Source of the DNA: Orbicella franksi | Taxonomy: Eukaryota | Assembly (NCBI GenBank): GCA_964199315.1 | Contig: OZ116712.1 | Span: 20,460,001-20,524,000 of the forward strand | Direction of reading: 5' to 3' | DNA: 64,000 nucleotides | Part shown: positions 10,401-18,110 of the stretch, piece after piece | Position numbering within the stretch: the stretch's first letter is position 1 | Layout of the letters: each line of letters begins with the position of its first letter | Program-made: the position numbers and the translations under genes | The notes under the pieces: generated by a model | Databases searched by the model: none | What the model was told of the DNA's origin: nothing | Seen by the model: only the letters and a program-made list of their open reading frames with translations

Positions 10401-13400
10401 GGAAAACAATAGAAAAACATTTAAACTTCAATCACAGCTCCCACAAATCTTGTTCAGGTAGATAATTGGAAGGAGGTAAAACCAACATGCAGAAAGTGAT
10501 CTTTTTTATTCTTCTTAGAAGGACAGCTTGAACGTATCACAGACTGATTTTTAAAATACTACTTAATCTCATTAAGACTTACTTCACTTAGATAAATAAT
10601 GAAGGAGCAAATAGATCCATTCACGCCATGGTCTTTTTCATAACATGGATCAGACCTCCAGAACTGCCGCATCCACTGACCAAAACAGTAATTGACAGAG
10701 AGAAATGTCAACATGATATATATTAGTATTCCTCCAAAAGTTTCATGACAACACCTACAATAAATGAATATATGACAACAAGTAAATGAAATTTCTCTGG
10801 GTGTTGTCACCTGGTGAAACTTGTCACACACTACAAGCTGTGCTGCTTATTAGAAACATCCTACACAGCAGTGATTAATGCAATCATGTAAATTGCAAAA
10901 TTAATGTTTAAATGTATTTCAAGTTACATCACTGAAGAAGAAATATTCCTGGTCACTTTAATAAAATAATGTTGATTGGCCTATCAAACATGTTGATTGG
11001 CCTATCAAACCTTCATAGTCAACAAATCTACATAATTCATCTTTCTCTAAATTAAGTTACATGTTCTACATACAGGGCTGTGCTCTAGAAGCACCTGGGT
11101 GCCAGAGGTGACTAACTTTTGCCTTTGGGCGACTGAAAAACTTACTTTTTTTCATATTAAGCATAATTAAGTGCTGGGTGCCCAGGATTTCATGGTTAGG
11201 AACCTTTGAGCTCCTTGTAATTTTTTTTAGACCACAGCCTTGAATATAATATATGATAGAAATACCAAAAGGACATACAGAAATCTTGCTAGCACATTCG
11301 GGGAAGTCGTTCTTAACGGGAATTTGACAGTCATCGTTTACTTGTTGGCCTGACCTTAAGGGGCAGAAATGCTCCACCTACAGTAATGGAGAAATAAAGA
11401 CCACCACCACATTTTAGACTGAGTTAACCTGAGTTAATATTAAGATACATGTAGCCACCACAGATAGGCAGGTAATTTTAACCTACATGCTTGAAAATTT
11501 CAGCCTTTATTTTCTGTAACCCTGCCACAAGAAAGTCTCACAAGATCAAAGGGCAAGTGAACTGAATTCACCACCCAAACAACATCATGACATTCCAATT
11601 TCAGATACAGTGAAATGTATTAATTTTGTGTCCAAAATAAATCCTTCAAAACAATTAGAGAATAAATTTCAAGCCCAATACTAAATTATAAACACTTTCT
11701 GTATTATAAATTTGTTGGCACCTGCAAAATGTGGACATGAGTCATTTTGCTTGTGGATGGTTTCAGTAAGAAAGGGTAAAAGGTTCTTAATAATGCCCAG
11801 GTCATAATTATAATATTGCACACGCACTAAGCTGCAAAACTGATATATAATATTTATCTATTGATAGTTTACATTTTAAGTAACCTTATTTCAGAAATAA
11901 CCAAACCTAGAAATCAAAGCAACTTGGAATAAACACATAGCAATCTATTTCATTTTGGACAAAAATCAGTAAACCACCCTTGGTTTACACATGTTTAAAA
12001 AATTCAAATTTTCACTCATGGATTGCCATAACAACTCTCAATGAAGAAGAAGCACACCATTACAATTCACAACCATAGAGGGATGTAGCTAAGAAAATAG
12101 TCTCCCTGCTAAGATGTTCATTGAGCTGGTCATCATTTTTCGTGAGAGACCTGGAACAAAATTTTTTCCCCATTCTTTTGCAACACCTTGAATGCAGGGC
12201 TACCAAGGTTCACATTTAAAAGATGGCAGACATAATACACAGAAAGAGAACACGCTCAAAACAAGGTTTTATTTACTCATTATGGTGGCACCGATACTCA
12301 AGATAGTCAGGAATATATTCCAAACTTTTCATTTAGATGGTTTGATATAGTTCAGGTATCAAATAACTGTATATATGCATAACCTAAAAACTGTTTGTTG
12401 TCCTTTACCAAGTAATCGCCCACCAAAATCCAGCCAGCAATCACCTCTTTCTCAGCCAGTGAATTTTGCCGGCAGCCAGCAGTTTGCGACAACCCTGCAC
12501 CATGATACAGTAAATAACAACAATTCCATTTACTTTATTCCACTCACCTCACTAAGATACTTCAAAAATGAACATGGGCTTCCATCCACTCCATGTTTTG
12601 CATACTTTGCATCAGACTTCCAGAATTTTTCCATCCACTGATCAAGGAACAATTTTTTTTTTCAGTACAAAGAATGAATAATTGATTCAAGTAGTTTGGC
12701 ATCCTAGCCTGTAAGACTTTCCCCCCAACAATCCCTAGCTTGCTAAGTGATAAAAAGGCTCAGCATTTAATGACAAGTGTAAATTTTATCAGAAGGTACC
12801 TTGACTTTTTCACCACAATCAGGAAAGGCAGCAACTGATGGCACAACACAATTCTCCGGTTCTGCATTTTTCCTTCTCAGCTTAAAAATCTGTCTTGGGC
12901 ACCATTGCTCAACCTACAATAGTTGGCAATAAATGCAACAAACAAATTTAGGATAATTCAAAGAGTACTTTTAACATTATCTGACTTATTAACCAAGCTT
13001 GGGGAGTGTACTAAAGAATATCAGCCCACAGCTTTGACATGTGAGTCAAATGACAGAAAACCTTCATTAACTCTCATCAAAAGGACAAGAGAATGAAATC
13101 AAGATTTGATGAGTTTGAACTACAGTACCGATCAGAAGAAACCTAACAGGGAACGCTTGACAGAACGCTTTCTGTTGCCATTCCACACGCGTTCCCGTTC
13201 CCATTCTTTATCCGTTCTGTATCCGTTCTGTATCCATTCCATATCCATTCCATTTCTGCTCTCTTCTGTTCTGTTCCCGTTCTGTTAGCATTCCATCGGT
13301 AAGCATTCTTGGAACTTGTTCAGAAGAACAAGGTCTCCAAGAACTCGTTTACAAGAATGCTACCAAGGAATTAGCGACACTCAGTTAAAACTGTCCCCTT

Positions 13401-16400
13401 ATGCGAGAATGCAAACAATAACTCAAATTTTCGTGGTGAAAATGCAAGTCCCGTTACTCGAAAAATATGAGAAGACTGTTTGCATTCTCATACCCATTCT
13501 GTATCTGTTCTGTACTTATTCGCAAACGCGTTCCCTGTTAGGTTTCTTCTGAGCGGTACTGTATCTATCAGTGTATGTTGTTTGATCAACCTTAATTAGG
13601 AGTGGACATAAAAAAAATATATAATTAATATTTAAATTTTAATTGCCCTCTCTGACCCAACTTGATTTGAAGCTTACCTCACTAAGGTAGACAAGGATGG
13701 AACAAAGACTTCCATTTACACCATTTTCAGCATACTTTGGATCTGACTTCCACTGTTCTTTCATCCACTACACAGCGGAAAAATAATGGAGCAACAACTA
13801 GATCAGCGACTACATCTGTAGAAATAACTACAGTCGAACCTCCCGCAAGCAACCACCCAAATGTCAAGCTTGGGTTGTCGCAAACAAGAGCTTAGACCAT
13901 ATCGGGTCAACACTTTGCCTCATTAGCATAATGGTAACTTCAGAGAGTTATTCCATGCTTTAAATGTGTTATTCATGTGAAAAGTCAATTTTGAGAACAA
14001 ATTTGGTACTTCCCATTGAGAAAATTTCCGTCTCTTGTACCAGCCAGGAATGCAATAATGTGGACAACAACTCATTATCCAATTTTTGCCTAATTATATG
14101 TCAAGTAGTTGTTTACGGGAGGTTAAGAGCAAAAAAAAATTTCCAACTTACAGCTCTAAAAGTGGACATTGTTGCTTGCGAGAGGTGGTCACTTACAAGA
14201 AGTTCCAAATATAGTGATTACACTTGGGAATTTTTGGTATTTTGGAAAACTGGTCACTGAGGAGAGATGGTTGCTTACAAGTATGAGAGGTGGTCGCAAC
14301 CGGAGGTTCAACTGTATTAAGTAAATAATGCATTGTTCCAGAATATATCCATACCACTTCCACAGAAGTAGTTTTAGTTTAAATCCTCCTCCATCTCATT
14401 TCCTAGAAATTCTAGTTTAACTTCATACTTTCCCCTTAAATTTTTCTTTTGTGACCCTTCACTCATTTAGAATTTCAAATGACCCTCCACAGGTTGGGTA
14501 GAGTATTTTCTGGAACCAAACGATGCACATTATGAAAGATTGTAACCCATTAAAGCCTGCCGCCTGACCAAGGCCAAACCAAACGACGTTGACTTTGACT
14601 TTATTATTATTCTTATCATCATTATTGCTATTATTATTATTATTTAGTTTTTATTATAGCATTTTAGCCTTATTTTAATTTGTAGTTTTTTATTTATACG
14701 CTCACTAGAATCTTCAGAATTGAAGGAGGTGAGTCGCCCAGGAAGAAGAAGAAGAAGAAACTAATAATTAACTGTAATTATCACTGTAATTAACACCAAT
14801 GGATGTTTTAGTGAATACTAAAATAAGGGAAGCTATTCATCAGAGAATTAAAACCAACTCTGAACATGCAAACTCTTTCTGTAAATTCATTTTTACACCT
14901 TTATCGATTCTCAGGATTTGTACTCCTTATTTTTCACACAACCTTGACAATGACTTCATAAAGACAACGAAACACGATCGGTTATTATCGTCAGTTTTTG
15001 CTTGTTTATGAATAACTAAATCCTTATTGATAATTATTGAATAATCACAGGGCTGATCTAGACTACAGTAAAGTTTTAATAAATTACTACCTCCACTCTT
15101 TTGTTGCATTCAGGAAATGCTGGATTGTCCGGAATGTAACAGAGTTCCTCATCTGCAAATCAAGCAATATATTGTTAATTAGATTGAGCAGCAATTCACC
15201 AGCAGTTGGTGTAATGTTCCCAAAGACCCAATCACTCATTAATTCACTAAAATTATTGTTATTTAAAAGAAATACTATTATATGATATACTTTATTATGA
15301 TGTATGTAACCAACAGGCTGCAGTACTGCTTACCTATTGGCCTGGTTAGATTATTGATTGTGTTGTTCAGAGACTTGATAGCTATGCTTAGATGCCTAAA
15401 TTCCATGGTGCTGTTCACTATTACATTTTCAACTTGATTCTCAAGATTCTGAATTCTTGCCAGCATATTTTGTAAAAGAACTGCAGTGGCTTTCTTCATC
15501 TCCCGTACATCTCCTGTGAACAAAAAATGTGCATCCCAAGGTTACCCCCAGTTACTTTGCCAGCACCCAGCAAGGGTTTGATCAACGTTTTCAGCAGGAG
15601 GGAAACTGTTTTTCACAGGCAGGCAAAACTACTTGAACTGAACTTCTTTATAGGAAAATTTTTCCTCTAGTTGGTCAAACCAAGAAGGCAAAATCATCCT
15701 TACAATTTAGCAGGTGCCCAGCTCTTAATGGAACCCCTCCCCAGTTATAATACACCTGGGTGAAAAGAGGCACCATGGAAGTAAAGAGTCCTGAATAAAG
15801 ACATTCTCATCTCTAAAGGCTACACTCCTTTTGATCAGCAACAAGAATTGCAACCTCTGGCTGGACCCAATTTCCTGGGCATGCCTAGAGTATTAATTTT
15901 GTTTTATATTCTCAATCACATTTGTCAGACTTGACAGGAAGTCTGTGAATTGAGGACATCCGATGTCACACCCGCCTAGCGGTCGTGATTCTTATTGCTG
16001 ATCAGGAGTACAGCCTCTGGAGATGGGAATGGCATAAAGATCACAACCTTCTTGTGAGAAACAGGGGGCTAAGCCTGTCTAGAGCTGGTGAGACAGTCCC
16101 ATCTTACCAACTTGGGTGGCTAAATTTTCACCGTGTCGAATTTGGTTCATCTTGCCTCCCGACAGAGCTATCCTGCAAGCAGACGTCAACTATTTCCTTT
16201 GCTTATGTTCCAGTTTCATGCTGTCTCTCTAGAATTCAGGGGCCATGATTTAACTGATTGCTTGACAATAAGCATTGATAAAAGTCAGCTGTGACTGGCT
16301 ATCAACACTAGATGCTTGACATAATTTATAGAGTATCATGTAATGTACTTTCCAGCAGGTTTTCATTAACTGAGGTATCAAACTGTACAAAGCAAAACAG

Positions 16401-18110
16401 TGGAAACTGGTCATGCATGCAGACCTATCACTATTGATCGTCATGTCTCTACTGTACTTTGTTAAAACTTCTCCTGGTATACAACACAGCATATAGTGCA
16501 CTTTGGAAACAACTGTGAAGCTCATACATGTCGATCAGAAGGCTAAGATTAAAAGAGAGCGACAAATACTGCAAACCATAATCCCAATTTACTTCATTAA
16601 TATGCATGTGTAACCAAAATTTGTAATAGTAATTGGACTGAGTGAGTACAATTCAGGGAGGAATCACATGAGTAATTTCAAAATTGGACAAGCATAAAGC
16701 ACAAGGCCAATCTGAAATTAAGAGCATGATTAACCACTGAATTCTATGACACGAGGTCCAGTGACTAATCAGTCGCATCAATAACAAATTTTGAAATTAA
16801 AGTCTTTTGAGAGTCTCTTGAGCAAAAGTCAGTTGCACCTTCCTAAGTTTTCAAAATTAATGTAGGAAACATTAATTTTAGGAAGCCATAAGAGTGGGTA
16901 TAATTGACATGTGAACAATGTAGACCCAATTGCAAAAAGTTGTACTTGGATACCTATATAATTGGACACCTACGTCATTGCACGCCCATTACATGACAAA
17001 TTGGTGCGCAGAGAACCAATTATGATAAATAATTTTGCTGTAGATACGATTAACAACACAAACAGCAGGATACCAGAGCAAGACTTGCAACAGCACGAAC
17101 ATTTGCTATTGTCATGCCAGCTTATTGAGGGAGTGTGGAAATTGATCTGCGGTGTTCTTATTATCAAACAAGATGAAAGTGTCAACAACTTTTGCTGTTG
17201 TTCATCACCCAATTCTCCTCAAAATGGCACGTAACATTGGCGTCACAAACGGCTTAGCAGTCTTCTTCAAAACATGAAAATTAATGTTTTTCAGAAGTCA
17301 CTTTTCCATGTGAAATGAAGTATGAAATAACATAAATCTGCATACAATCCATGCGGAACTCGCGATATTATAAAATTACATCCTAAAACTAAAGATCAGG
17401 GCTGAAAACTTACCTGAAGCTGAGCATGTCCAACCAGAAATTTATAAATCTCTAGGGCTTAATTTAAGTTAATAAACCGTATCCTTTGTACGCAAAGCAA
17501 GGTCATGCAACGAAAAATAAATGAAAAAGGGTTGTGATAGAAACAAATTCCACATAAAAATATCCCTGAAAGTAACTGTCAGATCAAGACAAAGTCGAAC
17601 AGTAAATAAACGGGAGTCTTTACATTCACTTTCGGCTGTTTTCATAGGCATAATAATTTACTGCAGACATGTACAAAAAGACAACTGTTAAGGAACGAAA
17701 ATCGATGTAGATGACGAACATACAGCAAAATTGTAAACACTGGAACACTGTTAAGACCAAAATACAGGGAAATTTGCTAGAATTTGTAAATTGTACGGGC
17801 GCTAAGGAACTTTAGCTAACAAAATACAGGAAGTCAGGCATAATATTTCTTATTTACCATTGTCTGAATCTCCAAGTCCATTTGTATACAACCCTTTTTC
17901 CTTGGCGATGGCATCTATATACTCCTTCGATAGCGCTATTATCTTCTGCTTTAAGTATTCAGATTGCGATCGTCTGTCGTTGAGCTGTAGTTGGATTAAA
18001 TACATCCCCCAAACCAGGCTGAGAACTATCAAGATGATACCTAGTCGATGAGACGTCAGTCGAAAGGTTCGCCACCTGCTTCTAGGTTTGTAGGTTCGGT
18101 CGCCCGTCAT
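1413..18110 (-). CDS. MGAT5: Alpha-1,6-mannosylglycoprotein 6-beta-N-acetylglucosaminyltransferase (GnT-V) with a triplicated N-domain, 885 aa
   Basis: 23 GT-AG coding exons in transcription order: 17858-18110, 15334-15513, 15091-15152, 13678-13767, 12800-12913, 12548-12637, 11279-11377, 10583-10675, 10249-10326, 9852-10019, 9144-9313, 7068-7199, 6576-6715, 5942-6066, 5350-5421, 4930-5025, 4566-4649, 4340-4402, 3730-3846, 2976-3050, 2375-2471, 1865-1922, 1413-1614. They sum to 2658 nt in one frame. Type II TM segment LGIILIVLSLVWGMYLIQL. GnT-V motifs KGGPLGELVQWSDLI, DSFGTE, HSPDNTFLGFVV, GLGFPYEGPAPLEAIANGC, TSQHPY, WPPLKAL and C-terminal LLFSCTG..RLCPCR..KEQVAL. Confidence 0.96.
5577..5870 (+). 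mobile_element. tRNA-derived SINE in an MGAT5 intron (antisense to the gene)
   Basis: Pol III A-box-like TGGCCTCATGG (5577-5587) and B-box GGTTCAAGCCC (5620-5630), followed by a core gtgttcttgggcaagacac. The 3' part catcccatccaggggggagt recurs at ~3940-3965. Confidence 0.75.
7640..7715. repeat. Compound microsatellite (ATT)n(GTT)n(ATT)n
   Basis: Read directly from the sequence. It produces the spurious poly-Leu and poly-Thr/Ile ORFs in the track. Confidence 0.95.
13123..13561. mobile_element. Tc1/mariner-type MITE, 439 bp
   Basis: 34-bp TIR cagtaccg(a/c)tcagaagaaacctaacagggaacgc with one mismatch. TA target duplications at 13121-13122 and 13562-13563. Internal cc(a/g)ttc subrepeats. Confidence 0.85.
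13831..14314. mobile_element. Tc1/mariner (pogo-like) MITE, 484 bp
   Basis: TA|CAGTCGAACCTCC ... GGAGGTTCAACTG|TA. Internal gagaggtggtcgcttac subrepeats. A related copy lies at 55451-55802. Confidence 0.8.
14330..14525. mobile_element. Short MITE-like dispersed repeat; second copy at ~34930-35115
   Basis: Ends ttccagaatatatccatac ... gtattttctggaa are imperfect inverted repeats. The same terminal motifs occur at 34930-35115. Boundaries are approximate. Confidence 0.55.
15802..16031. mobile_element. MITE-like element with imperfect TIRs
   Basis: cattctcatctct...ttgatcagcaacaagaat versus attcttattgctgatca...ctctggagatgggaatg form imperfect inverted ends. Confidence 0.55.

Follow-up and report, generated by a model that had tools for sequence, protein, structure and literature searches.

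Three tandem N-domains in a coral GnT-V, with the tether cysteine kept in the module next to the catalytic domain

Why should a glycosyltransferase that has one N-domain in human carry three in a coral, and why should only one of them keep the cysteine that ties this domain to the enzyme body? The question is raised by a stretch of 64,000 nucleotides from Orbicella franksi (contig OZ116712.1 of assembly GCA_964199315.1, positions 20,460,001 to 20,524,000; hereafter the window, in whose own numbering coordinates are given), which holds a gene for the N-glycan branching enzyme N-acetylglucosaminyltransferase V (GnT-V; MGAT5-like, GT18 family) on its minus strand at 1413..18110. A reading made from the letters alone (the sequence-only reading) had noted that the module next to the catalytic domain (M3) has the motif SDPCY and the two distal modules (M1 and M2) have SDPKY and SDAKY, and had proposed that a single partner cysteine can bond only one module. 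Work on what the GnT-V N-domain does continues; in the human enzyme it is required for glycoprotein acceptors and dispensable for oligosaccharide acceptors (Osuka 2022, PMC8889256). Our analysis makes it likely that this Golgi GnT-V combines a tethered M3 with free, expressed M1 and M2 that arose by tandem duplication. The three-module form is real and conserved; it varies the architecture of a familiar enzyme and does not amount to a new type of system.

Minus-strand translation places SDPKY at 13732-13746, SDAKY at 12602-12616 and SDPCY at 10640-10654, where they had been reported. The tether-site codons are AAG in M1 (13735-13737), AAG in M2 (12605-12607) and TGT in M3 (10643-10645), TGT and AAG being different at all three codon positions. 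In a hidden Markov model alignment of the modules (M1, amino acids 147-204; M2, 215-272; M3, 278-336; human A128-Y207 as the N-domain reference) the five cysteine columns read CCKCC, CCKCC and CCCCC, in agreement with the claim that the other four cysteines are kept in all three copies. Each module has these four intradomain cysteines together with the core W..W..Y..GV(D/N)GS.CS..YLSEVE.WCP. M1, M2 and M3 are only ~55% identical to one another, and their similarity ends at the exon borders.

Since each module takes its Cys1 and Cys2 from the exon before its 'b' exon and its Cys5 from the start of the exon after it, the modules do not coincide with exon pairs. Before the first module stands the stem exon E2 (15334..15513, minus strand, as are all exons of the gene; RNA joint 15152->15334, with a loose RNA end at 15514 that corresponds to the end of exon 1), followed by M1a (15091..15152; joints 13767->15091 and 15152->15334, CT..AC on the plus strand), which carries Cys1 and Cys2 of module 1 (C149, C160), and by M1b (13678..13767), which carries SDPKY (Lys176) and Cys4 (C187). 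The exon M2a (12800..12913; joints 12637->12800 and 12911->13676) is chimeric: it opens with VEQWCP, containing Cys5 of module 1 (C200), and continues through a linker to Cys1 and Cys2 of module 2, after which M2b (12548..12637) provides SDAKY (Lys244) and Cys4 (C255). The same order recurs in the chimeric M3a (11279..11377; joints 10675->11279 and 11374->12545), where VEHFCP with Cys5 of module 2 (C268) comes first and a linker leads on to the Cys1 and Cys2 that belong to module 3. M3b (10583..10675) carries SDPCY (tether Cys307) and Cys4 (C318), and exon Z (10249..10326, VERWCPLLPGRK...; joint 10324->10581, with a loose RNA end at 10248 that corresponds to the next exon) carries Cys5 of module 3 (C332) and opens the link to the catalytic domain. 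M1b and M2b are placed by translation and RNA joints, and M3b by translation, RNA and a phmmer match to the human enzyme. The range 10583-13767 originally assigned to the modules takes in the three 'b' exons and leaves M1a, at 15091-15152, outside.

The array is transcribed as one piece. In two polyA RNA-seq runs with the same species label (X23, X24) all seven joints of the series E2-M1a-M1b-M2a-M2b-M3a-M3b-Z were seen, each GT..AG and each with 18-36 reads per run, and RNA depth was similar across the module exons. No module-skipping joint occurs in either run and no differing letter is listed at the three tether-site codons in the reads, while a G>A variant at 11300 (M3a) is synonymous (Pro). 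With every joint spliced and none skipping a module, the mRNA that is observed has three modules, and an assembly artefact is not the source of the array.

By sequence, the product of the 23 exons (AG/GT at every junction; 885 amino acids, the length given in the sequence-only reading) is a GnT-V/MGAT5 orthologue and a predicted type II membrane protein, hence a putative beta1,6-GlcNAc transferase for the alpha1,6-mannose arm of N-glycans. The exact protein is absent from the protein collection, where the nearest entries are Logan transcript proteins (P0163, P0293; 92% identity) and the nearest named protein is that of Oculina patagonica (P0160; 85% identity). The window gene matches PF15024 (Glyco_transf_18) exon by exon (C15:20461458-20470022); P0163, as its 92%-identical proxy, scores 803.8 bits against a curated cut-off of 28, and PF15027 (MGT5A_N, transmembrane segment and stem) is matched at 52.5 bits by P0163 and at 61.5 bits by the Actinia orthologue P0002 (cut-off 27). 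Human GnT-V (PDB 5ZIB), ~47% identical over the catalytic part, has the same design of stem, Cys-rich N-domain, GT-B catalytic domain and Cys-rich C-terminal domain, but it has one N-domain where the coral enzyme has three, both distal ones with Lys at the tether site. Eight catalytic or acceptor-binding residues are described for the human enzyme (Nagae 2018, PMC6107550); E297, E520, E526, D378, F380, K554 and R558 are identical in the window protein (E437 being the equivalent of E297), and W401 is Phe. The last disulfide pair of the human enzyme, the C-terminal C737/C740, is also lost, the residues being W and Y in this coral (1416-1427, minus strand): the C-terminus reads VALWDGY in the window protein and the 92%-identical Logan proteins and VALC..C in Oculina and all other corals, and both equivalents are gone in Hydra also.

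The argument depends on the cysteine of M3 having a partner. The C172-C338 bond is an interregional disulfide of human GnT-V, C338 sitting in the long loop K330-R344, of which G337-P339 is counted with the N-domain (Nagae 2018, PMC6107550), and the same bond is stated again by Osuka 2022 (PMC8889256). The M3b exon alone matches 5ZIB (phmmer, E 7e-11) with its Cys on chain residue 57, which is human C172. The partner-Cys exon (7068..7199; KKLCPQ at 7160-7177, Cys477 at 7166-7168) had no phmmer match in the PDB when searched alone, and the mapping was made via the full-length Actinia orthologue (P0002), whose loop Cys falls on chain residue 223 of 5ZIB (C338) and aligns with C477. KKLCPQ occurs once, in the exon to which it had been assigned, and the loop partner Cys is present once in all 18 sequences of the multiple alignment. 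Human C172/C338 corresponds to coral C307/C477, and by homology we infer that the same bond forms in the coral enzyme. Neither the text nor the supplement of Nagae 2018 (PMC6107550) lists the two other pairs named in the sequence-only reading, C145-C183 and C156-C196; eight disulfides are counted there in the human crystal, five of them C-terminal and two interregional, so that a single bond remains for its N-domain. Module 2 of Sanderia malayensis P0004 lacks both Cys1 and Cys4, as do the modules concerned in P0022 and P0054; this joint loss fits C145-C183 as one pair and is the single observation here that speaks for it.

If one partner permits one tethered module, the same division should be visible in other genes. 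When 1.84 billion representative proteins were searched with a profile built from the three 'b' exons, 276 matched at E <=0.001, several of them with 2-5 matched stretches; named orthologues were obtained by a subsequent full-length search. The tether-site Cys is present in 123/123 modules lying directly before a GT18 catalytic domain and in 0/51 distal modules of GT18 proteins, where the residue is K (32), R (6), L (6), I (3), Y (3) or T (1) and four more are gapped. The contrast has a Fisher p-value of 3e-45, inflated because the sequences are related, and the pattern is not chance. Random loss of Cys among the modules of orthologues, which had been named in advance as the outcome that would speak against the idea, is not what these counts show, and the expectation of one partner Cys and one module with the tether Cys held, with a single loop Cys in all orthologues and the tether Cys only in the proximal module. 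The M1 site is K or R in 21/21 cnidarian species, the octocoral Xenia included. At the M2 site most hexacorals have K/R and Porites has L, and medusozoans have Y, I, L, V or T, the Rhopilema codon being TAT, one step from a Cys codon. The shared Lys, earlier taken as a sign of common origin of M1 and M2, is in M2 mainly a hexacoral feature.

Module arrays outside GT18 proteins, which do not enter into this count, follow the same rule. They never carry the tether Cys, whether in small proteins of Hydra vulgaris (P0003, P0005, P0009, P0013), in a GH16 protein of Creolimax (P0148), or in a GH17 protein of a marine protist and a CotH-domain protein (P0047, P0016 and P0020 also belong to these arrays). 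The stand-alone and enzyme-linked arrays consist of 2-5 tandem copies that, like M1 and M2, have Cys2, Cys4, Cys5 and the W..W..Y..GVDGS.CS core without the tether Cys; they differ in having no GT18 catalytic domain, hence no partner loop, in being far more divergent, and in Cys1, which can be aligned for the Hydra modules and a few more but not for the rest.

The three-module form is widespread in cnidarians and has so far been filed under automatic names in public databases; the literature that we searched yielded no description of the triplication or of the Cys pattern. Three-module enzymes of ~850-930 amino acids occur in Scleractinia and Actiniaria, in Scyphozoa (Rhopilema, Sanderia) and in Hydrozoa (Clytia, Hydra), and bilaterians and the sponge Oscarella have one module only. 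The MGAT5-like proteins of Oculina, Porites, Actinia, Nematostella, Rhopilema, Sanderia, Clytia and Hydra share the architecture of the window protein and its K/R-x-C pattern, and, where checked, its exon structure. Isoform X1 of the octocoral Xenia sp. (P0292) has two modules, one resembling M1 and carrying Lys, the other resembling M3 and carrying Cys, which reflects either loss of M2 or an incomplete gene model.

Exon structure preserves a record of how the array was built. In the crinoid Anneissia, used as the single-module reference, the N-domain is split into X (Cys1, Cys2), Y (W..Cys3..Cys4..YLSE) and Z (VENWCP.., Cys5), at intron positions that are those of the cnidarian genes. The window gene, Nematostella and Rhopilema have the pattern X, Y, Z'X', Y, Z'X', Y, Z, their introns falling at the same places, and the repeat unit is flanked by phase-0 introns. 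Since the chimeric M2a and M3a are each the start of a Z exon fused to the end of an X exon, they point to a tandem duplication with breakpoints inside those exons, followed by a second round. M1 sequences from all Cnidaria form one clade (96/94), and the same structure in Anthozoa and Scyphozoa together with this single clade makes the array older than the split of those lineages.

Which of the duplications came first is harder to read. When the tether column is masked, the tree joins M3 to the single modules of bilaterians and M1 to M2 (94/66), and support for M1+M2 is 67/77 once four long rows are dropped. In approximately unbiased (AU) tests neither M1+M3 (p 0.21) nor M2+M3 (p 0.25) is rejected, and when protist and Hydra modules were added as an outgroup the backbone collapsed, with all animal modules staying together. 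The best tree thus favours the earlier proposal that M1 and M2 derive from one already-modified copy, but the AU tests leave all three groupings standing.

Structure prediction agrees with modules that fold by themselves. AlphaFold was given the three-module segment of the 92%-identical P0293, with alignments of ~20 sequences; the predicted local distance difference test score (pLDDT) is 85-94 inside each module and ~50 in the M1-M2 linker, and a three-helix pattern recurs three times. M1 modelled alone has pLDDT 87.7 and a predicted template modelling score (pTM) of 0.73, and in Foldseek its only significant PDB match is 5ZIB, with a template modelling (TM) score of 0.85 and a root-mean-square deviation of 2.7 A over all 62 residues. 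The whole three-module model finds 5ZIB weakly (E 2e-3, TM 0.28) because its three domains are flexibly linked. The claim that the extra copies are translated, independently folded domains is borne out to the extent that they are spliced into the mRNA, conserved across Cnidaria and predicted to fold alone.

The sequence-only reading met with no contradiction, and its core has good support. Our data suggest the following explanation for the arrangement. The N-domain is a non-catalytic luminal three-helix module of ~58 residues, with five cysteines in other animals, and three such domains in tandem lie between the stem and the GT-B catalytic domain. M3 would be the orthologue of the single bilaterian N-domain, its C307 being disulfide-bonded to the single loop Cys, C477, and so tethering it to the enzyme body. 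M1 and M2 keep their four intradomain cysteines and hydrophobic core and have Lys at the tether position, the tether Cys probably having been replaced because only one partner exists, so that every Cys of the three modules has a possible partner; they would then be expressed, independently folding, untethered domains on flexible linkers. The array, older than the split of Anthozoa and Medusozoa, would have arisen by tandem duplication with breaks inside the flanking exons; M2a and M3a would be the outcome, each a fusion of the first part of exon Z (VE-WCP) with the last part of exon X (C..P..C..K). As the human N-domain is needed for glycoprotein acceptors, additional copies most likely give the enzyme wider or more varied contact with its protein substrates.

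Several points weigh against this explanation. The count of 123 against 0 reflects few independent events, the sequences being related; the structural evidence consists of predictions from shallow alignments; and the cnidarian bond is deduced solely by homology with human C172-C338. In the human enzyme C338A alone leaves activity unimpaired (Osuka 2022, PMC8889256), so catalysis does not depend on the tether, which selection may maintain for folding or stability only. The strict K/R of M1 suggests a positive role for a basic residue beyond removal of the Cys. An extra Cys711 without an obvious partner (SQHPYC, 3823-3825, minus strand) is conserved in all scleractinian orthologues; Actinia has Thr at this position, and Nematostella has Ala, like the mammal and the medusozoans checked. 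Since this lone cysteine is tolerated in Scleractinia, an unpaired thiol is not automatically forbidden.

That basic residue is the basis of the alternative with the strongest claim to attention, in which the distal Lys is an adaptive gain, for example for a salt bridge or for contact with an acidic or glycan ligand; it can coexist with a partner-limited tether, and we consider it unlikely but worth keeping in mind. Across the very deep divergence of the 21 cnidarian orthologues, K/R in every M1 is tighter than 'anything but Cys' would call for, and K also occupies the site in three modules of the CotH-linked array and in the Creolimax GH16 array, but the varied residues of M2 in Porites (L) and medusozoans (Y/I/L/V/T), and the F, Y, L or V of the Hydra arrays, argue that untethered modules in general demand no single residue. 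Purely incidental loss, in which neutral substitutions removed the Cys from two copies, would require two early ancestral events and nothing more; we judge it very improbable, since the M2 site has changed often (K, R, L, I, V, Y, T, with TAT in Rhopilema) and yet Cys stands in 0/51 distal modules, and since 123 proximal modules never lost theirs.

M1 and M2 might instead never have had a tether Cys, having been inserted by exon shuffling from a Cys-less array, an origin to which the absence of the Cys from modules outside GT18 proteins, the clustering of M1 and M2 apart from M3 and the bilaterian modules, and the phase-0 introns that bound the repeat unit all lend something. We nevertheless think it improbable: the chimeric exons open with the VE-WCP(L..GR) segment of exon Z and the crinoid intron positions match, which fits internal duplication, and the protist outgroup leaves the animal modules together, albeit on a poorly supported backbone. 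Hardly any weight can be given to the idea, in favour of which we saw nothing, that the extra module exons stand outside the functional protein as skipped, decaying or assembly-duplicated sequence, as the joints from M1a to Z occur at similar counts with none skipping, the frames are open, modules only ~55% identical are no assembly duplicate, and each is conserved across Cnidaria.

If a tethered M3 with free M1 and M2 is the right explanation, cnidarians provide a natural experiment in which two free N-domains have been kept beside a tethered one for hundreds of millions of years, from which it would follow that the N-domain probably folds without its tether, as the models predict, that the C172-C338 pair co-varies as a unit and that the building history of the array is recorded in its exons; constructs would also be at hand to probe how the number of N-domains affects substrate choice. 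Routine annotation hides much of this, because PF15024 starts inside the module (its positions 1-35 are the second half of the N-module, and there is no separate N-domain family), so that multi-module proteins are reported as several short 'GT18' stretches and both the repeat and the presence of the module on unrelated carbohydrate-active enzymes go unseen. The GH16, GH17 and CotH fusions belong to unicellular eukaryotes. A broader picture, which we put forward tentatively and would not yet bet on, is that the N-domain is an old, autonomous, mobile binding module predating animals, of which GnT-V captured one copy and locked it to its catalytic domain through a lineage-specific Cys pair, and to which cnidarians added an untethered two-module arm that alters the choice of glycoproteins. 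In that picture the Cys pattern would be a general marker separating tethered from free copies of the module.

A second context outside the count of 123 against 0 is the rest of the coral genome, which has no fewer than seven additional GT18 paralogues, five being clustered together (loci L004-L011 in G000: C15:4.11-4.27 Mb, C15:0.229-0.238 Mb and C10:26.36-26.38 Mb). Each of the six that were read has a single diverged N-module that keeps the tether Cys. The loop Cys was seen in 4/6; in L008 and L009 it was not located by a simple pattern, which is not a negative result.

Some minor features of the introns and transcripts may be added. RNA pile-ups within introns at 11076-11242 and 14285-14316 have loose ends on both sides and fixed differences (11109-11110), and look like copies of a repeat transcribed elsewhere, outside this gene. 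A Logan protein of 243 amino acids (P0296; compared with window 12770-12800) has an M1 identical to that of the window and runs from exon M2a into the intron (..GEKVKVPSD), which makes it the product of an intron-retaining or unspliced RNA of this gene. Two small repeats also lie in the introns (13189-13296 and 10969-11010), one a stretch with a period of 11 bases and the other an exact tandem duplicate of 21 bases.

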